64,000 nt of DNA from Ministeria vibrans ATCC 50519 (GCA_943704425.1 CALSCP010000382.1:1-64000); one strand, 5' to 3'. Positions 380 to 44,057 are shown, counted from the stretch's first letter. Numbers and translations: made by a program. Notes: a model not told the origin generated them from the sequence alone.

Positions 380-2735
380 ATGAGCGCCTTTGAAGGTTCG
401 CGTCTTCGTCGATGGACTCGTGTTTGCAATACTAATGATGCGTCCTTGGCTGCCTTCAGAGTTCGGCGTCATGCCTGAGATCATTCGCGCGGTCGAGGAC
501 CTGGACTGGCAGCTGCCGACGGACGTCCAGGCCGAGGCCATCCCGCTCATCCTGGGCGGCGGCGACGTCCTCATGGCTGCCGAAACGGGAAGTGGCAAGA
601 CTGGGGTAGGCACAGGTTTTTACAGCGGATTGCACAATTTCCCTCATTTTCCTTCTCTCCTCCTCCTCCTCCTCTTGCGCGCCAGGCATTCAGCTTGCCC
701 GTCCTTCAGATTGTCCACGAGACACTCCGAAGCGAGGCTGTGGCCAGCGCCAAGGCGGAGGCCGGCGCAGCCTCAGCATCGGCGAGTCAGTCGTTGTCGC
801 GCGAGCCGGTCGTTATGAATCTCGACGATCGCGACTCGCAGCTCGCCATCGACGCGACCGGGCTGCTCTGCCAGAGTCGCGACGGAAAAATGTGGCAAGG
901 AGCACGCGCGAGCCAAGGTCTCGTCAAGGGCAAGTACTACTACGAGGCGACCGTCACCGACGAAGGACTCTGTCGCGTTGGCTGGAGCGCGACAGTGGCC
1001 AAGTTGGACCTGGGCACCGACAAGTTTGTATGCAACTGCCGCTGTCATTGCCTCAATTCTCAAATTGTATACTCGTTTACCCCTCCTTTCTTAGGGTTAC
1101 GGCTTTGGGGGTACCGGCAAAAAGTCCAACGACCGTCAGTTTGTCGAGTACGGCGAGGCGTTTGGTCTCAACGATGTCATCTCGTGTGTGCTCGACTTGG
1201 ATAGTCGCATCCTGAGCTTTGCCAAGAATGGCAAGGATCTTGGCGCCGCCTTCTCTCTGCCCAACAACAACATGGCCTTGTACCCTGCGGTAGTCTTGAA
1301 AAACGCGGAAATGCGCTTCAACTTTGGCGCGTCGCCCTTCCTGCACGGCCCACCCGCTGGCTTCGCCGCCGTCAACGACTACGAGCTTGCCCACGCCGCC
1401 TCCGTCGACGCCGCTTCTTCATCGTCCGCCTCGTCAACCGCTCGCTCTCCCATTGCTCTTATTTTGGAGCCGTCTCAGGAACTCGCTCGTCAAACATACG
1501 AGCAGATTCGCATCTTCAAAAAGGTCTTCAAAAAGGCCATTAACTTTTTTTTTTTTTTTTTTTTTTTTTTTGCCCAGTCCTGTAATTTCTGTTCTGCACT
1601 TACGCATTATTGTTTTTTTGTTGTTGTTGTTAGTTCTTGCAATCGGACGTGCGAGTGTCACTGTTTACGGGCGGCGGAAAAGACAACACCAAGACGCAGT
1701 TCCGTGAGCTTGCGGGTGGCGTTGACATTGCTGTGGGTACGCCCGGGACAGTCAAGTCGCTCACGGAGACGAGCAAAATGAGTCTGAAGCGTGTGCGGTT
1801 TCTGGTGCTTGACGAAGCTGATGGGCTGCTAGCCAATGGCGAAAAGGACCTGATCCATAAGTTGTACCAGGGCTGTCCCAAGGCGAGTCCAGATGGGCGC
1901 CGACTGCAGATGATTGTGTGCTCGGCGACGCTGCACGCCAACGAGGTGCGCTCTCTTGCCGAGGCCCTTATGCACTTCCCCACCTGGATTGATTTGAAAG
2001 GGCGCGATGTGGTGCCCGAGACAGTTCACCAGGTGTGTGTGCGCATCGACCCGGCGGGCGTTCATGCCGAGACCAACAGTGCGCTCGAGGGCGCTCAAGT
2101 GCCCCCGCTCGATGGCGTCCACTCCCGCGACTCCTGCACCCCTAACTCCTCCGATGGGCTGAGCAATGCCGTCAAGCGGCTCAAGCCCGGCTTCATCAAG
2201 CGTCTCATTGATTCCTTCAACATGGATCAGGTATTGTTTTTTTTTTCACTGTCGTGTTTCTTTCACTCAATGTTTCTCTCTCTTCTTTTCACACTTTGTT
2301 TTTTTCTCCTATATCTATCTCTCCTTCTTACTTCCTCTCTGTTCAGGCAATCATTTTCTGTCGAACGCGACTCGACTGCGACAACCTGAAGACGTACCTG
2401 ATGCGCGAGGGAGGGGGTGACAGCATTACCGCCGCGTACCCCTGCTACTGCCTGCACTCGCGTGTGGGACCCGATCGCGAACGCAATCTGCAGGCGTTCA
2501 AGGATGGCGAGGTGCGTTTCCTCATCTGCACCGACGTGGCCGCGCGTGGCATTGATGTCCGCGGTCTCCCCTATGTCATCAACGCGACACTGCCTGACAA
2601 CCCCGCCGACTACATCCATCGCATTGGGCGCGTGGGGCGTGCCGACCGTATGGGCCTCGCCATCTCCCTTGTCGCCACGGTTTCCGAGAAGGTATTTGCT
2701 TCCCTTCTTCGCGTCTTTGTACCATAATTAGTGTT

Positions 2736-2807
<72 letters not shown>

Positions 2808-3275
2808 ATCATTTTTCTTTCTTTCTTTCACCACTCTTTTGTTTCTCTCTCCGTCACCGTTCTCTTTGCTATACCACTATGTTTCTTTCTCTCTCTCTCT
2901 TGATGGCTCTTTTTCTAATTATATTGTTCATTGTAGGTGTGGTACCACAAATGTCAGAACGACAAGAAGTGCCACAACACCAACGACATTTCACGTTCAG
3001 GCTGCACTATTATGTACGACGAGCCTGAGCTGTGGAGCGCCATCCAGACACACACGGGTGAGACTATCACGGAGCTCAACGACGACCTGACGGCCCCCAC
3101 TACGCTCGTCGATGGCAACGTCGTGTACGGCGGCAAGCGCAGTGCCGCGTCCGCCGAGCAGGCGTACGAGAACCATGTCGAGCTGCTCGCTCCGTCCGTC
3201 AAGGAGCTTGCCATGCTTGAGGCGACATCTCAGCATCACTTCTGGGACCTGAAGGCAAAGCAGTGGCAGATGTGA
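380..3275 (+). CDS. DDX1: ATP-dependent RNA helicase DDX1 (DEAD-box with SPRY insertion), multi-exon
   Basis: Spliced start MSAFE|[49 protein letters not shown]; SPRY segment ([20 protein letters not shown]); [39 protein letters not shown]; DDX1-type WYHKC tail; TGA at 3273-3275. Confidence 0.95.
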
Positions 3276-3465
3276 ACGATCTGCCTCCCTTTGTTCAGCC
3301 GTTCAACCCATTGATTGTAGAGGAACCTTTTTCAAATGCCTTTTTTTTACTTTAGATTGATAATAATCATTACGTCTTTTCATTTTGTTATTAGGAATTG
3401 ATATGGAACATCACACATAGAGGAAGGGGGGAGGGAGGAAAGAAAGAAAGACGAAGCGTATAGTC

Positions 3466-4354
3466 TCATCTCCGTCTGGATGATGAGCGTGACGAGTAAT
3501 GGTCATCATCGCGAGGTGGGCGGTCGCGGTCCCTGTCACGGTCACGCGAGTGCTCACGCTCGCGCTCCCGTCGCTCGTAGTCACGCTCTCGTTCTCGCGT
3601 GTGCTCTCGCTCTCGGTCCTTGCCGCTACTGGTTCGCTCACGGTCCCGCTCTGCCAATCTATATCGTTGTTCAAAATAGTGAGTTCCTTTGTTCTTCTCT
3701 CTCGCTTTGTCCCTTTCTCTCCATCTATCACTTGGTTCTTTTCTCTATCTATCGCTTTGTTTCTTTCTTCCTCCTCTATTTTTTTCTCTCTCTATGTGCT
3801 AACCTATCATCTGCGCGCCGTGATCGCTGCAAAAAAGAAAGATACATCACAAATGAGTACAAAGGAAAACCACAATGTAAAATAATACGATATACGATAC
3901 AACAAGGCGTACATCATCAAAAGGACGGTCTGTGTGAATGGAGGGGGAGGGGTGGTGCACAGCGGCAGCGGCAGCCGCAGAGGCCGCGTGTGCATTGACA
4001 GCGACGGCAAGCGACGCAGCGGCCGTCGCTGCTGCATTGCGCTGCCGCTGTAGTCGCTGCTTCTCCGAGTAGATGTGCCACGTGAGCTCATTAAAACCAT
4101 ACTGTAAAAAAAGTGGTTGACAATTTATATTAAGGGTTAAGAATGTGATGCACTAATTCTCAGGTTATTGTTATCCTCTCAATTTGTTTCTTTCTTCGTT
4201 TTTCTTAATTGTTTCTTCCTCTCTCTCTATCACTTTGTATCTTTCTCTCCCTCTCTATCACTTTGTATCTTTCTCTCTCTTTCTCTCTCGATCCTTTGTT
4301 TCTTTCTCCCTCCTTTCCCTCTCTTTATATCACTTTGTTTCTTTCTCTCTCCCT

Positions 4355-4393
<39 letters not shown>

Positions 4394-5215
4394 CCTCCCC
4401 AGTTTCTCTCTTACGTTGAAGTAGTCTGTGACATCAGCACCAGTCTGGCGCCATGGCTTGTCGCTGGTGTCAAAGTTGAACTCAAAGATGGACTTGCCTT
4501 GAAACAGGGGCACCGAGTCCATGCCAGAGATGGCCGCTGCGATGGCCTCGTTGCCGCCGGGAAGCGTCGACAGAGGCTGGTTGGTGGTCGGCGCCGTGCT
4601 GTTGGGCGCTGCCTGTGCGCCAGCAGCCGATGCGCCCGCACTGTTGTTGAATCCACCCAACAGGGCATTCTTCGCGTCGGTCGCAGCGACACCCGCAGTC
4701 GCCGTCGACGGCTGCGGCTGCCCGGGTGCCGTCGACGTGCTCGATGGAGTCACGGACGGCGCAATGTTGGTTGCCATCACGTTCGCCTGGTTCAGATCAA
4801 TGGCAAGTCCTTTGGAGATGTTGATTTGCACGTCGTCGTCCGAATCGTCGTCCGAATCGTCGTCCGAATCGTCCCCGCCGCCCCCGCCTTCGCCACTGCC
4901 GCCCTTCTCCGCGCCCTCCTCGTCTCCAAGGCCTGCACAGGCGATGCACACGGCGTGCGAGTGAGTGTATGACGAGACATGTTGCAAAAAGTGCCCAACG
5001 TTTTAAATCGTACCTGCTGCCGCCGCTACGTCCGCCGCCTCCTGTCCCTACGCTCACCCATCCATGTGTGAGATTCAAGCAGCGCAGAAGGCGAGATGAC
5101 GCCTGCAGGACAGTCTTTGCATTACCTGGTTTGCAGTCTGTCCCTCTGCGCTCTCAGCCGTCGCCTCGCTGTCGCCATACAGCATGGCGTCCACATCGTC
5201 CTCATCGTCAGCCAT
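3466..5215 (-). CDS. FIP1: Pre-mRNA 3'-end processing factor FIP1, multi-exon
   Basis: Acidic start MADDEDDVDAMLYGD; Fip1 motif FDTSDKPWRQTGADVTDYFN|YGFNELTWHIY split by an intron; RE/RD-rich C-terminus at 3466-3657. Confidence 0.9.
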
Positions 5216-5428
5216 GTTGAATAAAATAAAAATAAAAATGTGAGTGATCAGTGAACCAACGAGTGTCGTCGGACGAGTGTTAACGTTTCACTTCGATTCA
5301 GATCCATTGTTTGAATAAGTGTCCAGACACTACTCACTCAAGAGTCAACACTCAACACTAAGTCAGCTACATTCTGTTTCCTCGGTGCCTGTCCGCCATC
5401 CCCGTCAAATAGCACCCCCCCTTCAACC

Positions 5429-6970
5429 ATGTTAAACGTGCAAACAAAGGCTCGTGAGCTCCTCTCAAGTATTTTTTTTTTTTTTTTTTTTGAAAACACT
5501 CATCCGATTGTTCAATGGAAATGCTCGGCACAGCAATGAGCGTGCCGGTGCGTGCGCTTGTCCTCACAGTTGCGATCACGTCGAGCGTGTGTCTGGCGGT
5601 CCCCTCGGTGGCGTCGTTCCTCGTCATGACGCCGACGTATGTGCTGTCGCGCTTCTACATCCACACCATTGTGACGGGCTGCTTTGTGGAGGCCAATGCG
5701 GTCGCCGTGCTCGTCCACACCGCCGTGGTCGTCTTCTATGCCCCCTTCATCGAGCCGCTCTGGTCCCAGCGTGAGTTCCTGCGCTTCCTGTCCGTCACAG
5801 CACTCGTCTCAATGGTGCTCACTCTCTTCCTGTCCATCTTCATCTACGCTCTCTCCGCCACCGAATCCCTTCTGTACGAAATCTCCATTTCGAAGACTGT
5901 ATTTGTTTGTATATATCTGTCTGTGTATATTGTGTGTATGTGTGTGTGTGTGTGTTTGTCTGTGTGTGTATGTGTGTGTGTGTCCTACCTAAAAGGATAC
6001 TACTTCTCTTGGACAGGTTTCGCCCGCAAGGAGGTCTGTCCGCCGTGATTGCTGGCATCTTTGTTGCCATGAAACAGCTCGCGCCCGAGCGACAGCTCAG
6101 CATCCTTGGGTTGGTTCCGCTGCGTGCAAAGGTTTCGCAACATACTCACAGAACAAACATGGTCGCTGTACTGCTGTACTGATGCACCTCGCCAATACCC
6201 ACTGTAGAACCTCGGCTCGAGCGTGGCGGTACTGGTGATCATCTTGTGCATCGTGCAGCTGATTCCGCTGATGCAGTGCATGCTTTACTGCATTGGTCTG
6301 TTTGTCTCGTGGTGCTACTTGCGCTTCTACCAGGTACTCACCAAGATGATTGTATTTATTGGGAGTTGTGGTTTGTCCGTCCTTTAATCTCAACTCGTCG
6401 TTGTGCAGAAAAACGAGGCGGGTCTGCGTGGCGATCCCGCACCTTCATTTGCCTTTGCGACTTTCTTTGTGGAAGCACTACAGTAAGTGCCACAGGCGCG
6501 TTGTATTGCGGACAAGACAGACACACACTCTCACGCTCATTCACTTTTTCTTTCAATGGCGTAGGGCTCCCGTTGCCATGGCGTGCGATGTCGTGTACAA
6601 GGGGGCATGCCGCATTCGACTCGTGCCCGAGCTGCGAGCCGCGCAATCACTGCCCACGCATCAGCCCAGCTCAAGTAGTGTCAACAAGGCGCGTGCACTT
6701 CCACCCGCAACCGCAGCCAAGACCACCGACCGCATTGGCAACACTTCCTTCGCCGACGTGGGTCTGTCCGACGTGGCCGAGGACGGGAGACCCCTGAGCG
6801 ATGCAGAAAGACGTCGTCTGCTTGCCCTGCGTGCCCTCGATCGTCGCCTGGGCAACCTCCCCTCATCCACTGTCACCTCGCCGTCCTCCTCCTCCTCTGC
6901 CGCCTCGTCTCAACCAACTTCTATCTCTAACCCTTCTCCTCCTGCTCCCTCCTCGTCCTCAGACGCCTAG
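5429..6970 (+). CDS. TMEM115: Transmembrane protein 115 (rhomboid-like, DUF1751), multi-exon
   Basis: IEPLWSQREFLRFL, GIFVAMKQLAPE, VSWCYLRFYQ, GLRGDPAPSFAFATFF and C-terminal DAERRRLLALRALDRRL match TMEM115. Start codon uncertain (5429 via a short first exon, or 5515). Confidence 0.85.
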
Positions 6971-7146
6971 CGCTTCTCCTTTTGTTTTCGACTCTGTAGT
7001 TCATTAAATTATATCTTTTCTGTTCACAACTGAAGTTTTAACTGTTCGAGTTTCCCTGGCGAGCGTAATGATTTTTTTTTGTTTTTATTTCCATATAACG
7101 TAGAGATTGGTATTTGGAAGGAATCATCGCGCGTGCGAGCAGAGCT

Positions 7147-7195
7147 CTAACTAATAAAATAATAATAATTAATAATTAATAATAATAACAATAAT

Positions 7196-7248
<53 letters not shown>

Positions 7249-7269
7249 GAATAATAATAATAAGAATAA

Positions 7270-7324
<55 letters not shown>

Positions 7325-7330
7325 AATAAA
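7147..7330. repeat. (AAT)n intergenic microsatellite
   Basis: Imperfect AAT run; source of the poly-L and poly-Y ORFs. Confidence 0.95.
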
Positions 7331-7440
7331 GAAAAATAAATAGACAATCGAGAGCTGTACTCAATGTCAAAACGAGACAGTATGCAAACAAAGAGCTGCA
7401 CAATACTTCCTTTATTATATTTTATATTTTATTGTGTTTT

Positions 7441-9562
7441 TCATGTCCACAACTTCAAATTGAACGAATCGACGACCGTTCCATTGCCCGACACCACAAA
7501 GTCACACGAAAAGTCGGTTGCGTTCGCTGTGCACTGGTGGAACCCCGCAAGTGACATCTAAGTGCCACCACACAAGGTCAGTCCCCCCTGTCCAATCACT
7601 CAGTATAATGTGTTTTTCCTTACGCGCGCTCGCGACCACGCTGGCGCGGGATTCAAAAAATTGGTGTCCAGACGCTCCTTGTTTCCTCCAGCCTACAACA
7701 CCAAGTAAAGTTAGACATCCCGTGTCAGACACGCGCCTTGTCACTTTTTGATGAATACCCCCGACAGAATGTGGATGGTGCCCTTGGGCTGTGCAAGCGA
7801 ACCCGACAGAACTCCATTGCTAGTGAGGGGCAGTGTGCGTTCGCTGTGATGCACGTGCGCTCCAAAGAACACATTGACGTGGAACCGCTCAAAGAGCGGC
7901 TCCAGATTCTTGCGCAGACCGGCCGCCTCGGCCTCGCAGGCCTTCTGGTGAGAGGCACAGTAGAGCGGACGATGCGCCATGACGATGATCCAGGGCCGCA
8001 CAGCACGCGCGTGGGCCGTCGTTGCCTGCGTCAAATCACGCACAAGCCACTCGTACTGTTCAGAGGAGGGAGGGAAGTCTGAGAAGGAAGGGAGAAATAG
8101 ATACTAATGAGAGGCACCCACGAACAGGAATAACCGTTGGTTCGTACAAAAGGGATCAAGGCCATCGGGACCCTCGGAGCGCAGTGCAACAAAGTGGACG
8201 GGTCCTGAGTTCCACGAGTAGTACATGCCGGAGCTGTTGGCTTGTGCGGTGGGCATGACAAAGCGAGCGCGGTACGACGCAAAGTTGAAGAAGCCCTCAT
8301 GATTGCCGGGCAGTGTCATGTACGGTGTGAAGGCCACGGCAGTCGCCACCTTGCGCATCCACACGTCCCACAGCGGCTGAAATCCATCCGCATACGACAG
8401 ATCGCCGATATGGATGATCTTGTCGACCTGCCGTCCCTGCGACAGTGCCGCCAGGCGAAACGCCGTCATGTCGCCCATATCGGATGCACCCGCATCGCCC
8501 AGCAGCGCAAATGAAATGCTTCTTGTCGATTCTTCGTTGGGCCCAATGAAGTTCATGGCTTCGTTTTCAGACCTACGCACACCAACAAGAACACTCTAAA
8601 TGAAATGTTCCCTCACTACGCCGTCCTTTCTACCACTGTGGCTTGTTCCAGTATCCCACAGCCTGGGCACTGCCCACCCGGTAGTAGTACTTGACACCTG
8701 CCGTCAGGCCTGTCACAACCGCCTCGTGTAGCGACCCCAACCACCCGCCTTTGGTGTACGTCGACTGGCGTATACAATGCACAGCGAGATGCATGTGTCA
8801 ATCGAAAATGGACTGCACACCGCCGACACCCTCCCCTTAAAACTTACCTGCGTCCCTTCAACCGTGTGTTCCCACACGTCGTGGTTCTCCCAACCATTCG
8901 TTGTGCCCCACTGGACTGTTGAATCGGGTGTTTCCTGCAGCGTCGTCCACATAATGCGCATCTCTCCGTCGCGTCCTGTCAGTGCAATGTGCACTTGTTC
9001 GGGCGTATAAGGACTGAAAGAGAGTGAGCACAACAGCGAGCGGCCCTACGCCATGCGTGTCTCCTTACGTCATGCAGCACTCAAACGTACACATGCCGCC
9101 CATCATTCCGCACAGTGCGCGGGGACTGAACAAACCAAAACAGCAAAGAGAGAACAATAATGACATTGAGTACAGCTCCCGATTCATATTCCCACGTCTC
9201 ACCTGTACTTGACGAGAACTCCTGTGTCCTCTTGCACAATGAGGGGTCCTAGGGAGTCCACGCCCGAGCGGCACGCTTCCTTGAGCGCTCCAGGAAGGTC
9301 GTCACACACTTTGTTGAGCGCATCCTCAATCTACAGAAGCAGGTTACGCCCGCGCACGCTCGGCGGCGAACCACCTCCTCGTGCTGCTGCTGCAGCGCAC
9401 CTTGTGGATGGTAGAGTTCGATTCAAGCTCGGGCAGGAGTCGCGCGATCTCATCGACACACAGTGCACACGCCCAGCCGCCTTCGGAGAGACTGTGCGCG
9501 TCCACACGCGCGCCGATCACCGCCATTATACATACGCTGATGGCTAGTGGCGTCAACTGCAT
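7441..9562 (-). CDS. Secreted purple acid phosphatase with N-terminal saposin B-like domain, multi-exon
   Basis: Signal peptide MQLTPLAISVCIMAVIGARVDA; six-Cys saposin pattern; PEQVHIAL FN3-type PAP N-domain; metal motifs GDAG, GDLSY, GNHE, VMAH, AHVH; C-terminus GAGGNKE...VVDSFNLKLWT*. Confidence 0.85.
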
Positions 9563-9699
9563 CTTGACAATGATTAATTTTATTTTCATTTTCATTTTCA
9601 TTTTCATTGACACGAACTGATCACTACTAATTCGTCGAATCGTCTCCAGTCTCCTTCGCTCTACAATCTAAAATTCTAAATCTACTTTTTTTTTTTTAC

Positions 9700-12600
9700 A
9701 TGTTGCGCATTGCACTTGTGGCGTTGTTTGTGCTGGGGTCGCACGCGGCGCGATCGCAGTTTGCGGCGATGTCGGACGACGAGGTGGACAAGCTGGCGGA
9801 ACAGTGGCAAGACGAAGAGGAGAAGGCGGAGATTGCAGCGGAGCGCGAGAAGGTGCGTCGCCCCTTACCCTCCCGCCATGTGTTGCTGTCAACCCCCGTT
9901 GTGATGCGTGCTCAAGAAGCCCCTCTCGTGGACTGCTGAGCGTTTTCTGCCCGAAAATTCTCCCTGATTCTTTTTCTTCTTTTCTCTTTTTTTTTGCCTT
10001 TTCGCCGTAGATGATGAACAAGGCGCCTGGCGACAACGGCCTCATGATCATTTCGCTCGAGGGGCTGACCAAGGTGCCCTTTTTACGCGAGCCCGGCGAA
10101 CTGTTGTCTAATGACTGTTCTCTCTTTATCACTTTGTTTCTCTCTCTATCACTTTGTTTCTCTCTCTATCACTTTGTTTCTCTCTCTATCACTTTGTTTC
10201 TCTCTCTATCACTTTGTTTCTCTCTCTATCACTTTGNNNNNNNNNTTCTGACGCTCATGCTGGGTTGGGGCTGTGTAGCAAAGCACGAGAGTGTACTCTC
10301 TCTATCACTTTTGTTTCCTTTTCTCTTTCTTTCTCCAGGTTGCTTGCGCTGCTCTGGACGTGTTTGAAGAGGAGCCGCCCAAGAACCGTGCACTCATCAC
10401 GCACGCTAACCTCATTTCGACGCCCCATCTGGGCGCATCGACGCGCGAGGCACAGGTCAAGGTCGCCGAGGAGATTGCCGACCAGATCGTTGCCGCCAAG
10501 AAGGGCGAGGCCATCCAGGGCGTCGTTAACGCGCCGGCTCTTGTCAACGCCATGAAGGAGAGCCTTCAGCCGTGGGTAAGTTGTTGCCTTTTTTTTTTTG
10601 TTGCATTGTTGTTGTTTGTGCGCGCTCGCGCTCACTGTGCACACCACTCACTCATTGTTTGTGTGTGTCATTATCGTTACTAGGTCAACCTTGCCATGCG
10701 TCTGGGCATGCTTGCCGCACAACTGTTGGGCGGAGATGCCTTTGGCGAGCAGAGTGTGTCGCACTCGCTGAGTAAACTGACGGTGCGCGTGCAGGGCAAG
10801 TCTCTGCAAGCGGCGGCGTCGACGCTCGTCAACGCAGCACTTGTGGGCATGCTCAACACACTCCACAGCAACGACACCAACCTGGTCAACGCGCCGTCCG
10901 TCGCTGAGCAGGTCGGCCTCAATGTCGTCGAGGAGCGCAGCAACAACGTCCACTCCAGCTACGTCAACGCACTGGCGCTCGTCTACGAGACAGACGCGAA
11001 CACCAAGAGCGAGTACATTGGCACTGTCTTTGGCAGCGACCGTATCCGCCTCGTCACAGTCGACGGCCATGGCTTTGAGATCTTCCCTGCAGGCAACCTT
11101 GTCTTCTACTCCAACGAGGACAAGCCCGGTGTCCTCGCCGCCGTTTCATCGCTCTTTGCCAAGGCCAACGTCAATATCAGCGACTTCAACATGTCCCACC
11201 AGGACGATGGGGTAAGGGCCACACTCTACATATACAGCCACCTCTTTTCACACTCCTTCGTTCTGTTTTTCAGCCCTCCCTGACCATCCTCAACACCGAC
11301 GACTCTGTTCCTGACGAGACTCTCGAGAAGCTCCGTGCAATCAACTTTGTCAAGCACGTCCGTCGCGGTACGCCCAGACCTCTTTTTATATATACACTGT
11401 GATGCCGCTAAGTTATTGTTTCTTGTGTGTGTGTGTGTTTCATTATATTTTAGTCGTGTTGCCGCACAAGATCAAGCCAGCATTTTGAGGTGTGTGTTGT
11501 AAAATGAAGCTTTAAGAGCAACCCAGCCGCCAAAACGTTTGTCACAGTTATCCTGGTCATTGCGTTAAAGTCATGTCGTTGATTTTTCTTTTTTTTTTTC
11601 CTTTTCGGAAGTTGAGTATTGACTCATCAACTGCGAAAAAAAACTGATACAGTATTTCACTCACATTAGAGCAATAGTTAGTTCTTAGCATTCTTTTTTG
11701 TATGAGTCTTGCTGAGAAAGTTGAAGAATATGACACACGTGCGCGTGTTTTGCGAGAGCAGGGCGACACAAGAGGCGCCGAGGAGGCGCATCGTGCGGCG
11801 GCCTGTGCAATCTCCGAAATGGCCACACAAACTACCGATCGAACTGTACTGCGCGCCCTTCAAGTTCAGCGCGCCGACCACGAACGACGTGCCGACGACA
11901 TGAGACGTGCGTCCGCCGCCAAAGCCATCGCCCCACAGCCGCCTGCGAGTTCCGCGACAACTCGTTCGACCCGTCCGCGTTCCTCCGTCTTGGCAACGTC
12001 TCCTGCCAAGTCTGCTGCGCCCGCTTCCGCCCCACCCACGCGAGAGAAGACTGTGGTGGCCGAACAACCACCTGCACTTGCTGCGGACGAGACCACAGGC
12101 GTCTTTGAGGGAGTGTGGGAATCGTTTGAGGCACTTTTCAAAGCTGCGTTTGCCACAACGAAAACGACGGGTTCTGCCGCTACGACGACGACTTCTACTG
12201 CTGCTGGCGGCAGTAGGACCAGTAGCAGGAGTAGCCGCGGCGGTGGCGGCGGCGGTGGTGGTGGAGAGCGCATGAGTTTGCGCGAGCTGTATGCACACGG
12301 TGGACGTGGGCGTCTTTCGAGTGACGCGTTGCCAGCGCCACGCCAACTGTCGACGCGTGTCGAAGACGACTTTCTCGTCGTCAGCTCTATTGGAGGACCC
12401 TCTTCGACTGGTGTCGCCGCTACAACGGCCCCGTCGCCCACCAAACAACAACAACAACAACAGCGAAAGATGGACGATGTGGCAGAAGAGAATTTGATGC
12501 TCCGCGAGCAACTGCGTTTGGCGCAGGAGGAGCTAGTGCGACTACGCGAACAGGCAGAAGCATCCGATACACTACGACAGTCAATTGCAACCTTTCGACG

Positions 12601-26630: not shown

Positions 26631-28081
26631 ATGGACAGTGAACGAGACGACTTTCCGTCGTCATCGTCAGCGTCGGCGAGGTTATTAGAGCCGGACGGAG
26701 CGGGCGAGGAAATCTCCTGCTGCTCACGGCACTGCATTTGCGTCGAAACTCCTGTAAGATGCGTTGGCGGTCGTCTTGCGGACCCTCGGCATACCGTGTA
26801 TGCACAGTGTGGTTGGTTGACAGTGTTCCCGTGGCTCTGCGACTGCCACGACAGTGCAAAAATCGCATTTTTTTTTTCTCGGGCAACACAAAACTGATGT
26901 TTCGTTGGTCACGCAGGGAATCCAACGACGGCACGGCGCGTCCATCGACCACGCCATGGTGGTGATCTTTCTTGAGTTCTTCTCCATTGGTCTGCTCATG
27001 ACCATCATGCCCAACGTGCTGCACATCTTCTTCAAGGACAATGTGTTTCTTGTGAATGGCGTCGCGCAGGGCATCAAGGGCTTCCTGTCCTTTCTCTGCT
27101 CGCCTCTCATTGGAGTTCTTGCAGACGTGTATGGACGCAAGTGGTTTCTCTTTTTGACCGTCCTCTTCACCACGGCACCCGTTGCACTCCTCTTCGTCTC
27201 CAACCTGTGGCTCTACACGTTTGCTCTCGCTATCTCCGGCATCTTTTCCGTCACCTTCTCCGTTGTCTTTGCCTATGCTGCCGACATTACGAACGACACT
27301 GAGAGAAGTGTTGCCTACGGAAAGGTGAAGAGGCGCACTATTTTTGTTGGGTGCATGCTGCATGGCCATCTCTGTTTGCGTCTTTGTTTGTGAATGTGTG
27401 TCTTTGGTATGTGTGTATACTTATTATCATATTATGACGTAGTATATACGCTCTTGATTCTCTATTTAATTTCTTGTTAATATAATTATATATATATATG
27501 TGCGTGTGTATTCGTCATTGTTCTGGCTTTTGGACTGAAAAACTTCCCACGTCCGTGGAATAGGTCACCGCCATGTTTGCTGCATCGCTCATTACAAGCC
27601 CGGCTATTGGCTACTTTGTCACGGAGTTCTATGGCACATCGGCAACCTTTGCGCTGAGCTGCGCCATTGCCCTGCTGGACTTGCTCTACATTGTGCTTGT
27701 GGTGCCCGAGTCGTTGCCCGAGCGACTGCGCTCCCGCTCGGTCTCTTGGAAGCAGACGGATCCCTTTGCCTTCTTGCGCACCACCATGCGGAACAAGGTG
27801 CTTGTCCGTCTCGCCCTTATGGTGTTTCTAAGGTATCCATCGTCCTCGTTTTCCTTTGTCTCTTGCTCTCTTTAGCTCATTCTCACTTCTCTCTCTCTCT
27901 CTATCACTTTGTTTCTTTCTCCTCTCTCTCTCTCTATCACTTTGTTTCTTTCTCCTCTCTCTATCACTTTGTTTCTTTCTCCATTCTCTCTCTCTCTCTC
28001 TCTATCACTTTGTTTCTTTCTCCTTTCTCTCTCTCTATCCCTTTGTTTCTTTCTCCTCTCTCTCTCTCTATCACTTTGTTT

Positions 28082-37347: not shown

Positions 37348-38601
37348 TTACTTATTCCGCGTGAGGATGTCTCGCGTAAGCAGAACGAGTGCGTCGCGCT
37401 CGGGGCCCTCCGGCAGAGGCTCAAGCGCCGCACACGCACGTGCTGCATAGTCAGCTGCAAGAGCCCGAGTGCGCTCCAGTCCACTGCTCTCCAGCACATA
37501 CTGTCGTGCCTACACACAATCCCCCTCCCCCAACCATTAGTCATTAAATAGATATATCAAAGCACATGTGCGTACGAGCTCGACATCGCCGTCACCCTGG
37601 AAGCGGCGTACGATGAGCTGATGGAGGGCGTCGTGGTCAACACTTGCGTAGAGAACGGGCGCCGTGGCGAGCCCCAGCTTAAGGTCCGCCGCCACAGGCT
37701 TGCCCATGTCTTCGGCGGATGCAACAAAGTCAAGCAGATCGTCGACCAGCTGGAAGGCAATGCCTGCGTTGCGCCCATACTCAAAGGCAGCGTCGTGAAC
37801 GTGCGTCGCGTCGGTTGCCAGCACCGCCACCGCACGGCACGAGCACGCAATCAGCGACGCTGTTTTTTTGTACGTTTTCACGAGGTACCGCTCAAAGCGT
37901 TCCCCGGGCTCTAGTGACGTCTGCAGCTGCATGAACTCGCCACACACGAGCTCGTCCAGCACCTGACTCAGGATCTCAATCACGCGAACGTTGCCGAGTC
38001 GCGCTAGCTCGAGCGACGCCTTGCCCAGGATAAAGTTGCCGGCCAGTACTGACTGACGCACGCCGTAGAGGGTGTTGACAGAGGGGGCGGCGCGGCGCGT
38101 GTCGGCCTCGTCGATGACGTCGTCGTGCACGAGCGACGCCGTGTGGATCATTTCGGCGACCATGGCGACAACGAACTGCGCCTCGGCCGGCGGGATGGAC
38201 GACGACTCGTACACGCTGCTGGCGTGTGGCACGCCGTCGGCGTGGACTAATGGCGAGGATTGGCGGCACAGAGCGCCCATGAGCAGGGCGATGAGAGGGC
38301 GCACTCGCTTGCCCTCCTGCAGCATGTACAACGCGGCGGCGTCGACAAGCGGAGAGTGTGTTGCGCCGTTGCACGCGAGGCGCGACGTCGCCTGTTCGCC
38401 AAGCGTCTTGAGCTGCGTGGTGACGGCGGCGCGGGCCTGGCGCGCTGCCTCGATTCGAGGCGGTGACAGCATGTACGACGGCAGCGCGACCGTCGCTGTG
38501 TCATGCGCCGCCGTCGACGCCCACCGTAATAATCGGCCTCGCTGTATTACCGCGTGTGGGCGTAGAGGGCTCCGCTGCAGCGCCCGTGTGAAGGTGATCA
38601 T
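37348..38601 (-). CDS. PDSS1: Polyprenyl (decaprenyl) diphosphate synthase subunit 1 / Coq1
   Basis: GKRVRP, EMIHTASLVHDDVIDEADTRR, KTYKKTASLIA, AFQLVDDLLD, DLKLGLATAPVL; Arg-rich N-terminal presequence-like segment; final exon ending ILTRNK*. Confidence 0.92.
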
Positions 38602-38864
38602 GGGGAGGAAGAGGGCGACGAACCAATGAAACAAAAAAAATGAATCACATCATATCAGATTTCAGAACGAGGAATGATTACGATAACACAAAAATAAAGG
38701 GTGTGCTTCTGGGCGTCTGGCGAGTGCCGACTGACTGGTTTGACTGTATTTCTTACAATCATTGCCTCCACTTTCCCTTTTACCAGCTCAACTTCGATCA
38801 TTTTTTTCAATTATTTTTTCAAATTTTTTTTCGTATTCTCAGATTTTGACACCTTTTTCGATTG

Positions 38865-41800
38865 ATGCGCTCCACTGCCGCGCTCGGGGCTAAGCAGCTG
38901 AAGCGGCTGCGCAAGACGCTGGCGGGCCGCTGGAAGCACTCCAACGTCCCCGTCAACGGAGTAATCTCGACGTCGTTGGAGCTGTCCGACGAAGTGATCA
39001 AGGTGAGAAGAAGACGGCCCGTTGCCCCAGCAGCGATACCGGCGCCCCTGCTGCCCGCTCCGCCGCTCTGTTGCCCTCCCCCGCCCATCTATGAACTCCT
39101 CGTCCGTGCAGATCCTCCGCGGACGCCCCTTTTTCTCCATCTCCATTCGCTTTGCTCAACTTGTCTTTTTTTTTTTCGTCGTCGTTTGTGCAGGAAACTG
39201 CCTTGTTTCGCAGTGTTGTGCAGCCGCCGCCGCGCGGCAGCCTGCGGGAATGGATCACAATCAACACCATCGACTTCTACAACCAGGTAAGACACGGAGT
39301 AGTCTGATGAGTTCGCAGACGGACCGCTTTTTTTTCTTCTTTTGCTTCCGTAAAACGTTCAAAATTCACTTTTGGCCCGTTTTGTAGGCGAACACACTGT
39401 ACACAGCGCTTGCAGACCACTGCACGAACGACACGTGTCCCATCATGACGGCGGGCGACATGTTTGAAGTGTACTGGGCGGACGGCAGTGCGACGGACGC
39501 ATCGATGGAGCCATCGCCAACCCACTCAGTGCGTGCCTGTCCTTCACACTGCCCTTGCTGACTCTCCCCTTGTTCTTTCTCTCTCTTTGTTCTTTGTTTT
39601 CTTCTCTCTCTCTATCTCTTTGTTCTTTCACTCTATCATTTTGTTCTCTATCACTTTGTTCTCTCTGNNNNNNTTTTGTTCTCTATCACTTTGTTCTCTC
39701 TGACTATCACAATGTTCTATCACTTTTGTTTCTTTCTCCCTCCTTTTTCTCTCTCTCTATCACTTTGTTTCTTTCTCCCTCCTCTCTCTCTCTCTTTATC
39801 ACTTTGTTTCTTTCTCCCTCCTCTCTCTCTCTCTTTATCACTTTGTTTCTTTCTCCCTCCTCTCTCTCTCTCCTCCGATATTTCAGGTATCAGCACCCGA
39901 TTACATTACACATCTGTTCGACTGGGCCTACACCCAGTTGGCGGCTTTCCCCACCGACGGCACCTTCCCCGATGACTTTGATCTGCGTCTCGAGACGATA
40001 CATCGACGGCTCCTTCGTGTTTACATCCACATGTACCGCTTTCACTCAGACTCTGCCGAACTCCTTGACGGTCTGGACATTCTGCGATTGCGCGTGCGTC
40101 ACTACCTCTGCTTTGTGACCGAGTACAATCTCATTGGAGCCGATCAACTGCTGCCCATGCGCAGCTTCTTCCTGCGCACCCTTGGCATTGACGTGACCGG
40201 CAGCACGGGGACACCCGACAATTCAGTGGGAGCCAATGTATTGCAAGGTGGCGGCTCAAAGAGTGGTGGCAAGGGGAAAGGTGGAGTGGCGGGAGCGGGG
40301 GAGCGAGATGCACGAGTGTTTGGGGTGCCTCTGGTGCAGATTGTAGAGTATGAGCGGGCAGAATTGGAGCGCGTTGGGTCGAGTGGAGCGCGCCGAGGCG
40401 CCATCAACTCGGCGAGCACTGGAAATTTAGCTGATGCCGAGCTGTACAACTCGTCAGGCAAGGGTCTTTCGACGACACAGCCCCCGGCGTCCAAGCATGG
40501 ACTGTCGCATGAGTTGCACACGACCGTGTCCGATGGCAATGTTGGTGCGGTGACGTCGCTGGATGACACGTACGTGCCGCAGATTGTGCAGAAGTGTATT
40601 CGGGCGCTTGAAGGGGCAGTGGATCGTGAAGGCATCTTCCGCATCTCCGGCTCGGTGCGGATGGTCAAGGAGCTCACCAGTGCGTTTGACAACGACTCAA
40701 TGGGACTGCAGGTGAACATTGACGACCACCCCAACGGCGAGCATGTCATTGCCGGCGCTCTCAAGCAGTTCTTCCGTGAACTTCCCGAGCCTCTTCTCTC
40801 CTTCTCTCTCTACGACCAGTGGATTGCCACCGCCTCTGGTCAGTATCTACTACATTGTGTGTTCTTTAGTTTTGACCCTTCTTTTTCTCATACTTTGTGT
40901 TTGTTTCTCTTTCTATCACGTTGTCTCTATTACTTTTTTGTCTCTCTCTCTATCACTGTGTTTCTCTCTCTCTCCATCACTTTCTTTCTCTCTCTCTGCA
41001 TTAGAACCCAATGCGGTTGAGCGGATGGCACTGACCAAGCGACTGCTGCACAAGCTGTCGTTGCCGGCCCAAGCGACGCTTGCCATGCTTCTGCGCTTCC
41101 TGTGCTTTGTGGGCTCGAACGCCGAGAAGAATCTCATGAGTGCCGACAACCTGGCTGTCGTGTTTGCGCCGGGTCTCCTCCGACCCCCCGAGGTCAATAT
41201 TCTCTCTCTCTCTATCACTTTGTTTGTTTTTTTCTCTCTCTATCAATTTGTTTCTCTCTCTGTATCACTTTGTTTCTCTCTCTCTCTATCACTTTGTTTT
41301 TCTCTCTCTCTTCTCTCTCTGTCTCTCTCTGTCACTTTATCTATTTTTGTTTTTTTTTTCAATATGAATCAGTGTGTCGTATTATCGTGTACTTAAATTT
41401 TCCTACGTCTTGTGTTGCAGGGGACGGATGCGCGGCAGTTGTTCTCCGATGCGGCGGTGCAACAGCAGGTTGTCGTGTTTCTCATTAACCACTCGGACCG
41501 GCTCTTTCCCGGAAGCACTGTCCAATGTGAGTCTGTTTCTTATTGTGTTGAGTTGAGTGATTTTGTATGTGTGTACGTGTGTGTGTGTGTGCTTCGTTTA
41601 GTACTTTTTGTGCATTAGGTGGATGTTGTTGTCGTGTTGGTCTCATGTGTTTCATCCCGTAGCATGCACTTCTCCCCGCTCTCGAACGCGTACCATTATT
41701 CGTGTGCGACCCGAAGGAAAGGTAGTGGGGAACGCATGTCACGCAATCACAGACACCACCGGCACTCACTCACTCACTTCTTTATCTATTTTTTTTTTCG

Positions 41801-42665
41801 TATTGTGTTTTACAATATAGGAATTACTACATGCGAATGTGGCGGGAGACAGTCCTGAAGATTCGGCGCGACGGCGGGAGCGACTGAGACGGCGGGCAGC
41901 GGGACGGTCCTCGTCGGATGTTGGGGTGCGACGGCCCATGCAGGGTCTGACGGTGTCGGGGGTGCTGGCTGCAAGCGAGTCACCGGTGGAGGAGGAGGAG
42001 GAGGGTAGGGAAGACGAGGGGGGGGGGACGACGGGAATCGATGTAGGGGAGCGGACCATGCCCGTAGCGGAGAAGGAAGGGGACTACGGGGAGACGGATG
42101 GGAGTACGGTGGAGCCGCATCCGCCTGCACGACGCATCGCGAGTGACTATGCTCAGTTGTCCACCTTTGATGTGGCGTCCCTGCCTAGTGGGGACCTGCG
42201 CATGGCCTTTGCGCTGCCACGACTTTCCAAACCAAAGTGTATGATTTATGATTTGGTTGTGTGTGTATGTGTGTGTGTACTCATGACTTTTGCTCTCTTG
42301 CAGTTGCGTTTGTGGAGGATGCTATGGAAGAAGAAGAGGAGAAGGAAGAGGAAGCAGCAGTCGCAGAGGAGGGCGAAAAGGAAAAGGAGAAAGAAGGGTC
42401 GGAAGGGGGTGGTGCAATAGAGCAAGAGAAGAAAAAGGAGGAGGAAGAGGATGAGGATGTGATTGTGGTGGACGAGTCGTGGTTTCCCGGTGTTAGTGTG
42501 GCGTTGGCCGACACAGACACGTTCAACCGAGTGCCTGAGCGGTCATTCAGCCTTGTAGGGGAGCTGAATGGGCCCGACGAGGGCGGTGCACATGTCCCGA
42601 CAGTCGGTCTCGACGGTACTGTGCTTGATCTACACGACGAACGCTTCACCGAGAGCTGTGTGTAG
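38865..42665 (+). CDS. MOB1/phocein domain - RhoGAP fusion protein, multi-exon
   Basis: MOB motifs EWITINTIDFYNQ, HCTNDTCPIMTAG, VSAPDYITHLFDW, RRLLRVYIHMYRFH, HYLCFVTEYNLI; RhoGAP motifs VFGVPL, VPQIVQKCI, EGIFRISGS, LKQFFRELPEPLL, NLMSADNLAVVFAPGLL; acidic C-terminal exons less certain. Confidence 0.85.
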
Positions 42666-42822: not shown

Positions 42823-43845
42823 TTAGGCACTTCCGAGGACATGTCCCTTTCCAGGAAAGGCAGATGGGGCAGTGGGGGGTACGGGAGCAGAGGGGGGCGA
42901 GGTGTTGGGAGTAGAAGAGGGCGGAGTGGAGGAGAAGAGGTCGCGAAGACGGGCGAGGAGAGAGGTGGCAAGGGAGGAGAGGGAGGCCACCTGAGAGGAT
43001 GTCGATGATGGCGGAAGGGGCGGAACGTACTGCGCGGCGGACGCGTGCGTGACAAAGGACGGGAGCGACGTGATGGGCCCGAGTATCGCAAGGTTTTCGA
43101 TGCGCGTGATGAGCCAAGCTGGACACACCAGTGTGGTGAGTGACGGGAATAGACCAACTACAATCATAGAGGCGCATTAAACTTGAATAAGACGTGATAG
43201 AATGTCTTCTTACACACGACTCCTGTGATGAGACCAGCCAGATGGCCAAGGAAAGAGATGTTGGGGAGGAAGAGTTGGAACATGACGAGAAGCAGGAGCG
43301 GATAGACCTTGGTGGGCACATCAAAGACGCCAAAGACGGAGGAGACAGCGGGGGCATTGGGAGCAACGCACGCCTCTGCGATCACCGTGAAGAGAACGCC
43401 GCTGAAGCCAATGCTGCATGTCGAAAGAGACGCGGGAAAGCCGACCCGGCCGAGGGCGTACGCAACAGCGAGCTGGACAATGGCGTTGCAGACGACAAAG
43501 ACGGCGACGAGCAGGAGCAGCGCGACAGAGCCGCTTCGTCGCTCGTACGGGCCGCCCCGGTGAATCCACGTCGCCATGTTGAAGTACAGGTGAAGAATGC
43601 CGCCGTGCACAAAGGCATGGGTGACCAGGCGGTACGCTACGAGTCCAATCGTTGAGAGGAGGAGGGCGAGAGTGGGGTGATGATCAATGAGTACGCTGTC
43701 GCCAGAAGGTTGAGCAGGACAAACATGTCGCGCGCCAAAGCGTATAGTCCACCAAGCTGTACAGATAGATGAGGATACAGAGGGCCACAATGGCCGCTGT
43801 AGTGACCGGGACTCTTCGGCAGAACGCAAGCACCTGTCCCAGCAT
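42823..43845 (-). CDS. Rhomboid protease (RHBDD1/RHBDL4-like) with C-terminal SHP box
   Basis: YRLVTHAFVHGGILHLYFNM, catalytic GFSG, SFLGHLAG; C-terminal FPGKGHVLG; two introns. Confidence 0.85.
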
Positions 43846-44057
43846 GCAAAGTGAACTTCAATCAAAACAATTGAATTGTTTGGAAAGGAATTCATTGTCT
43901 GGAAGTGTCGAAGTGAAAAGTCTATGGGCAAAGCATTGTGCTGCTCTTGCCTCTTTCATCTTTGTTTTGTAATAGTCTTGTTTTGACATTGAGTACAGCT
44001 ATCGATTCTGAGGCGGATTCTCTCATTTTTCTTAATTTCATGTGCATTACAATAGAG

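Follow-up and report, generated by a model that had tools for sequence, protein, structure and literature searches.

Can a MOB domain be built into the same polypeptide as a RhoGAP domain, and what would it do there? The question is raised by a plus-strand gene in a 64,000-nucleotide stretch of the genome of Ministeria vibrans ATCC 50519 (GCA_943704425.1, CALSCP010000382.1:1-64000), this whole stretch being referred to below as the window. The gene was originally predicted, from the sequence of the window, to encode a MOB kinase-activator domain fused to a RhoGAP domain and thereby a hard-wired link between Hippo/NDR signalling and Rho-GTPase shut-off. It comprises Mob1/phocein and RhoGAP domains, both of them complete and encoded on one strand by colinear exons, one of which they share. 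MOB proteins are normally stand-alone, as that prediction stated, being generally of a single domain and 210–240 amino acids long (PMC7096357); the window gene departs from this pattern, with RhoGAP following in the same exon.

All searches with the window gene were run exon by exon, from the unjoined exons; exons 1 to 6 were set by splice-site landmarks, and all have GT...AG borders (Table 1). In the Pfam comparison, exon 2 corresponds to positions 9–35 of Mob1_phocein (PF03637) with 21 bits, which taken alone is below the cut-off of 27 bits, exon 3 to positions 37–71 with 29.8 bits, and exon 4 to positions 75–169 of 170 with 60.6 bits (E 2.5e-16). The same exon 4 matches positions 1–84 of 148 of RhoGAP (PF00620, cut-off 24.5 bits) with 73.3 bits (E 2.4e-20), and exon 5 matches positions 89–147 with 53.1 bits. 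The whole Mob1_phocein profile is accounted for by exons 2, 3 and 4 in colinear order, and the whole RhoGAP profile by exons 4 and 5.

Exon 4 is one open frame of 317 codons, containing neither a stop nor a gap. Because both half-domains share this frame, the fusion is independent of any splice or assembly gap. The placement of the C-terminal half of MOB and the first half of RhoGAP in one exon was predicted correctly, except that the exon starts at 39887 rather than 39888, and so was the irrelevance of the gap near 39668, which sits in intron 3. It is extremely improbable that neighbouring MOB and RhoGAP genes only seem to be fused, by an artefact of annotation or assembly. An assembly gap does lie within the gene, and prokaryote-style gene callers break the homologous loci L011 and L025 (see below) into pieces; however, the sequence already contradicts an artefact, since the 317-codon frame bears both half-domains, three homologues (P0011, P0012 and P0164) have uninterrupted fused open reading frames, and neither half of a MOB domain nor half of a RhoGAP domain would be able to fold alone.

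These homologues define a small family. When 1.84 billion representative proteins were searched exhaustively by HMMER with exon 4 as the query, 4003 matches were obtained at E <= 0.001, and among the best 150 of these both domains were found only in P0011, a protein of 511 amino acids from Pigoraptor vietnamica (EukProt EP01136), and P0012, of 547 amino acids, encoded on a 1734-nt Logan contig. Both are fused in uninterrupted frames and share about 40% identity with the window protein. Matches scoring higher than these two are multi-RhoGAP proteins; the top matches of the search, among them P0007 (1771 amino acids), P0009 (1352 amino acids), P0008, P0010, P0013 and P0016, carry 3 to 10 tandem RhoGAP stretches, each partial relative to the profile, an odd repeat architecture. 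A follow-up profile search built on the fused proteins brought up P0164, the “Mob1” of Capsaspora owczarzaki (UniProt E9C5Q2, E9C5Q2_CAPO3; further accessions XP_004340838.1, XP_004364159.1, KJE92333.1 and KJE98383.1). This protein of 652 amino acids contains PF03637 and PF00620, is 70% identical to P0012, and is colinear with the window exon at 31–39% identity over the aligned parts.

Two genomic contigs carry further members. In L011 (Logan SRR33270664) the gene is split into called pieces, with the order of parts as in the window; one exon holds the C-terminal half of MOB, the linker and the first GAP helix, and it is followed by a short intron and then by the arginine finger in EGIFRVS. 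L025 (NCBI GCA_025491055.1, JAOQFC010109645.1) has about 75% DNA identity to the window gene and shares with it the intron site before exon 5, after the ...ASG/TEG codons.

The window gene is best explained as an orthologue or close paralogue of this small MOB–RhoGAP family, which, apart from the two contigs, is apparently restricted to filastereans (Capsaspora and Pigoraptor). The homologues suggest that the organism of the window is itself probably a filasterean. No fusion was detected outside filastereans, in searches that could miss highly divergent fusions or those split by gene callers in intron-rich genomes. A word-index search with exon 4 gave weak RhoGAP matches only, its length window of 0.55–1.75x and the shortness of the half-domains explaining the missed fusions, and the ESM Atlas yielded only generic RhoGAP clusters, below 0.8. 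No paper on a MOB–RhoGAP fusion or on the Capsaspora protein was found in the literature, and a 2026 paper on Ministeria names MOB1 and RhoGAP only in separate lists. The original prediction had reckoned with an architecture not widely annotated, and this much stands; Mob1_phocein combined with RhoGAP is nevertheless present already in public databases, for Capsaspora and Pigoraptor. The architecture is rare but not new, and the family is catalogued but unstudied.

The origin of the fused MOB domains was addressed by a maximum-likelihood tree of MOB domains with five fused members, namely the window protein (by its exon-4 half), P0011, P0012, P0164 and L011, L025 being left out. The five form one group with 98% ultrafast bootstrap and 96% SH-like approximate likelihood ratio test (SH-aLRT) support, although all are on long branches, so that their grouping may be inflated by attraction. 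The group is nested among class-I-like MOBs, away from the MOB4-like sequence of the same genome. The common domain order, the VFG..L start of the GAP domain and the joint losses of E51 and K104/K105 point in the same direction as the tree. This common grouping of the fused MOB domains would fit a single ancient fusion event involving a class-I-like MOB, in a tree built without MOB3 (class III) sequences. The subfamily phylogeny suggested by the original prediction thus places the fused MOBs together and not with stand-alone MOBs, within the same limits. In a MOB profile search the best 120 matches were all MOB1 orthologues, and no solved MOB3 structure was present among the matches in the PDB.

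The GAP domain of the window protein has a complete catalytic set: the arginine in GIFRISG, an arginine finger intact as predicted, the lysine in ALKQFFRELPEPLL and the asparagine in SADNLAVVF. The roles of these three residues are known from p50RhoGAP, and judging from their presence the domain is apparently active. The solved structures that come closest to the GAP half are those of ARHGAP15, ARHGAP12 and the chimaerins (51–54.6 bits; PDB 3BYI, 6GVC and 2OSA).

The residues of the MOB domain, given here in human MOB1A numbering, were interpreted in the light of the mutational analysis by Kulaberoglu et al. (2017; PMC5612953). In the PDB comparison the MOB part is nearest to MOB1A/B (46.7 bits, versus 20 bits for phocein/MOB4 and 18 bits for yeast Mob2), and exon 3 alone matches MOB1B with 35.2 bits. 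The zinc site (C79, C84, H161 and H166) is present in the window protein and in all four fused homologues; in the window it is made up of the Cys pair of CTNDTC and the His pair of HMYRFH, both intact as expected. The phosphate pocket K153/R154/R157 is represented by three arginines in the window. R153 and R154 occur in all five fused members and R157 in four, the Pigoraptor vietnamica protein having Cys at the position of the window's Arg. None of the five members has lost W56 or D63, and E55 is present in the window protein and three others, the remaining one having Asp; D63 of MOB1 bonds with His646 of LATS1 (PMC5612953). As to the basic pocket and the NDR-binding face, whose conservation had been proposed as a check, the pocket and E55, W56 and D63 are kept, whereas E51 is lost.

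These residues make it plausible that the domain could dock to an NDR/LATS kinase or a phosphopeptide. In its stronger form the latter possibility would mean that the MOB domain no longer serves NDR/LATS kinases and acts as a phospho-Ser/Thr module recruiting the GAP to a phosphorylated scaffold or a Ste20-type kinase. The phosphate pocket is indeed the best-conserved functional surface, K153/R154 is the core of the general phospho-Ser/Thr-binding site in MOB1 (PMC5612953), and the NDR-related E51 is missing from every member. Such a role is, however, rather unlikely in view of the retention of W56, D63 and, in all members but one, E55; moreover, K104/K105, which are required for MST/Hpo binding (PMC5612953), are lost, so that a Ste20-type partner would need a different mode of binding.

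The preferred reading, which taken as a whole we consider fairly probable, is that of a spliced MOB–RhoGAP gene in which the MOB domain targets or regulates the GAP, thus coupling NDR-type signalling to inactivation of Rho-family GTPases. The RhoGAP domain would be the effector, switching off a GTPase of the Rac/Cdc42/Rho type; its nearest solved relatives, ARHGAP15, ARHGAP12 and the chimaerins, are Rac GAPs. The MOB domain would be the targeting or regulatory module, an address label or a switch. By docking on the N-terminal regulatory helices of an NDR/LATS-family kinase it could place the GAP beside the kinase; alternatively or additionally, the R153/R154/R157 pocket could place the GAP beside a phosphorylated partner. 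NDR-type morphogenesis signalling would in this manner be coupled to local Rho-family inactivation and to the control of cortical actomyosin. The Hippo pathway of Capsaspora governs the actin and myosin cytoskeleton, not proliferation, and the loss of coHpo or coWts leads to actomyosin-dependent contractility (PMC10959527). A Rho-side output is therefore attractive in this lineage, the phenotype being tied so far to coHpo and coWts.

Regulation could also be intramolecular, the MOB domain masking or positioning the GAP until the phosphorylated basic, Ser-rich N-terminal segment binds the MOB pocket and releases the GAP. Such a mechanism would resemble the N-terminal switch of MOB1 and is compatible with the preferred reading of a MOB-targeted GAP, but as an explanation in its own right it appears very unlikely. 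A basic N-terminal segment is located upstream of the MOB core in all members, the pocket is conserved, and the two domains are separated by a short linker in the Capsaspora and Pigoraptor proteins; the N-terminal segments, however, align poorly, and the likeness between the basic RRL/RKR segments at the homologue N termini and the segment encoded by exon 1 is weak.

Several points weigh against the coupling of NDR-type signalling to Rho inactivation by this protein, beyond the long branches of the fused MOB domains and the lack of class III sequences in their tree. E51 is replaced by Gly in the window and by S, R, C or M in the homologues; MOB1(E51K) was reported to be deficient in NDR1/2 binding, with inconsistent behaviour (PMC5612953). 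K104/K105 are lost in all fused members, the window protein having a longer, lysine-free acidic/neutral loop in their place, and K135 is lost as well. In L025, a 28-nt deletion over the GAVDREGIFR codons (L025:490-600 versus window 40570-40700) eliminates the arginine-finger codons and causes a frameshift; this may be a real inactivation or an error of a very fragmented assembly, and if real would mean that GAP activity is dispensable in that organism. In the Ministeria genome, no LATS/Warts gene was located by Pkinase_C and DNA pattern searches, and no SARAH domain was matched in a search run without a positive control.

For the T12/T35 sites there is no aligned counterpart in any fused member, and because these sites, E51 and K104/K105 are missing, control by Hippo/MST of the MOB1 type is doubtful; an input of this type is unlikely, and Hippo/MST probably neither loads nor releases the MOB domain as it does MOB1. 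Of the hard-wired Hippo/NDR–Rho link that had been envisaged, the fusion, the zinc site and the arginine finger are upheld, and a Hippo/MST input is unlikely as far as it depends on K104/K105, T12/T35 and E51. With K104/K105 and the T12/T35 sites gone, the “Hippo” half of that proposal is weaker than its “NDR” half.

The genome (29.7 Mb in 2860 contigs) was searched for other components of MOB/NDR pathways. It contains four MOB loci: a canonical MOB1, the fused gene, and two loci which we take, from their motifs, to be a MOB2-like and a phocein/MOB4-like gene. A plausible kinase partner exists, since an NDR/Cbk1-type kinase is encoded on contig C673, scoring 79.8 bits against Cbk1 and 66.7 bits against STK38. 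Of the MOB-binding N-terminal region of this kinase, the second helix alone was identified, the contig beginning close upstream. This gene was detected with a shorter DNA pattern, a longer degenerate pattern having matched nothing. Ten Pkinase_C matches were considered as NDR/LATS candidates and ruled out as S6K/Akt/PKC-like and ROCK/MRCK-like. A canonical Furry/MOR2 gene, which contains no RhoGAP, is also encoded; its N- and C-terminal parts share one reading frame but have a lone stop codon between them, which may represent a short intron or a real break.

Features of the gene, its surroundings and these other loci are listed in Table 1. The window has a eukaryotic appearance, with short CT-rich introns bordered by GT...AG between GC-rich exons. 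The MOB–RhoGAP gene is located on the plus strand between two minus-strand genes, for a polyprenyl synthase and a rhomboid protein. The distance from the polyprenyl synthase start to the MOB–RhoGAP start codon is about 230 bp (38635-38864), and this interval is probably a shared divergent promoter. Removal of the 191-nt intron 1 is needed for exon 2 to be in frame.

The 3′ end of the gene allows two outcomes. Exon 6 has two candidate donors, GTCCAA at 41520 (phase 0) and GTGAGT at 41527 (phase 1). With the former, reading continues in frame through the acidic tail exons, and use of the latter, stronger donor with the acceptor at 41820 would lead to an immediate TGA. Because there are two possible donors, protein forms with and without the tail may both exist. 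The tail exons 7 and 8 have open frames and coding-like GC periodicity; they gave no Pfam match and showed no likeness to the tails of the homologues. They are assigned to the MOB–RhoGAP gene, to which they probably belong, because the interval up to the rhomboid gene is too short to hold a further gene. The possibility that the loop of about 65 amino acids within the GAP domain is an unspliced intron was rejected: its GC content is exon-like, no usable acceptor precedes the codons for the conserved VP, and an open loop occupies this position in L025 too.

Three introns are filled by a minisatellite with a 22–24-nt unit (about TCTCTCTCTCTATCACTTTGTTT) in the sense orientation (39598-39872, 40900-40997 and 41203-41338), and it is present elsewhere in the window at about 4328, 10127-10207 and 27902-28069. 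The 20-mer TATCACTTTGTTYCTCTCTC occurs in 1086 exact copies in the genome (532 forward and 554 reverse) and in none in the control, many of these copies being within the first 200 bases of contigs. Three of the four N gaps of the window adjoin the minisatellite, which is probably a main cause of fragmentation of the assembly.

Table 1. Exons, residues and neighbours of the MOB–RhoGAP gene in the window, and related loci elsewhere in the Ministeria vibrans genome (residues in human MOB1A numbering)
Feature	Coordinates	Strand	Content
Polyprenyl synthase gene	37537-38634	minus	Neighbouring gene
Exon 1	38865-39002	+	Start codon; basic N-terminal segment (KQLKRLRKTLAGRWKH); donor GTGAGA
Exon 2	39194-39286	+	MOB helix; E55/W56 (39248-39253), D63 (39272-39274)
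Exon 3	39388-39528	+	Zinc ligands C79 (39421-39423) and C84 (39436-39438); lengthened acidic/neutral loop at the place of MOB1 K104/K105
Intron 3	39529-39886	+	CT-rich, 40% GC; minisatellite and 6-N assembly gap (39668-39673)
Exon 4 (fusion exon)	39887-40838	+	MOB C-terminal half, linker, RhoGAP first half
Exon 4, MOB part	39887-40168	+	R153/R154 (40004-40009), R157 (40016-40018), H161 (40028-40030), H166 (40043-40045)
Exon 4, linker	after 40168	+	Gly/Ser-rich, between MOB and RhoGAP
Exon 4, RhoGAP start	40316-40333	+	VFGVPL
Exon 4, GAP loop	40373-40573	+	About 65 amino acids, between the VFGVPL... helix (the first of the GAP) and the VPQIV helix
Exon 4, catalytic residues	40640-40642; 40763-40765	+	Arginine finger; conserved Lys (residue mapping)
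Exon 5	41005-41192	+	RhoGAP C-terminal half; conserved Asn (41148-41150)
Exon 6	41421-41519 (or -41526)	+	Last RhoGAP helix (QQQVVVFLINHSDRLFPGS); aligns with the GAP end of P0012 and L011
Probable exon 7	41821-42238	+	Acidic low-complexity tail, open frame
Probable exon 8	42304-42665	+	Acidic low-complexity tail, TAG stop
Rhomboid gene	43164-43931	minus	Neighbouring gene
Canonical MOB1	G000:C1922:3378-4048		Highly conserved, motifs almost identical to animal MOB1
MOB2-like (presumed)	G000:C2613:20579-21319		FFHHINLYYG..., RRIFKMLFHILAHLYHSHY
Phocein/MOB4-like (presumed)	G000:C2675:45633-45890		WQYEQLR, ATEEWSFLCAAHK
NDR/Tricornered/Cbk1-type kinase	G000:C673:1-2814		DFGLCTG and FINYTYKRFEG hydrophobic motif
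Furry/MOR2	G000:C2682:26000-35999, open reading frames 4400-9955 and 1604-4399	minus	MOR2-PAG1_N, MOR2-PAG1_C, Fry_C

Joining of a MOB fold to an enzyme is unusual, MOBs being textbook stand-alone adaptors, and the fusion is seen in filastereans, the lineage used for reconstructing the pre-animal Hippo pathway. Since that pathway acts on the actin and myosin cytoskeleton in Capsaspora (PMC10959527), MOB–RhoGAP is a genetically testable candidate for a route from NDR/Hippo-type kinases to the cytoskeleton. A more far-reaching interpretation, which we regard as unlikely, is that the fusion records, in the manner of a Rosetta stone, an output of NDR/LATS signalling that acts on Rho-family GTPases directly and independently of transcription, in those amoeboid organisms that are most closely related to animals, and that it represents the missing effector behind the contractility of Capsaspora upon deletion of Hippo kinases. 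The value of the finding lies in an overlooked gene family rather than in a new architecture, the Capsaspora orthologue carrying the uninformative name “Mob1”.

Capsaspora “Mob1” resembles the window protein in its basic N terminus, Mob1_phocein domain, RhoGAP domain with the VFG..L start and acidic tail; it likewise keeps the zinc ligands, the RR..R pocket, D63 and the arginine finger and lacks E51 and K104/K105. In contrast to it, the window protein has the loop of about 65 amino acids in its GAP domain, and the tails are unrelated. With MOB1/Mats (human MOB1A; PDB 5TWF and 1PI1) the window domain shares C79/C84/H161/H166, K153(R)/R154/R157, E55, W56 and D63, while E51, K104/K105, K135 and the T12/T35 sites are absent from it; MOB1 stands alone, with a length of about 216 amino acids, whereas the window domain is tied covalently to a GAP. 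The GAP domains of ARHGAP15, ARHGAP12 and the chimaerins share with that of the window the GxFRxSG arginine finger and the KxFFRELPEPL motif, but they are targeted by PH, WW, SH3, C1 or SH2 domains, and that of the window is accompanied by MOB. Functional links of MOB/NDR modules to regulators of Rho-family GTPases are also provided by Mst1–Mob1–Dock8 in lymphocytes and by the Orb6/Cbk1–Mob2 control of Cdc42 regulators in fungi. These links are non-covalent, consisting of interactions or phosphorylation and often involving guanine nucleotide exchange factors, whereas in the gene described here MOB and GAP are parts of one polypeptide.

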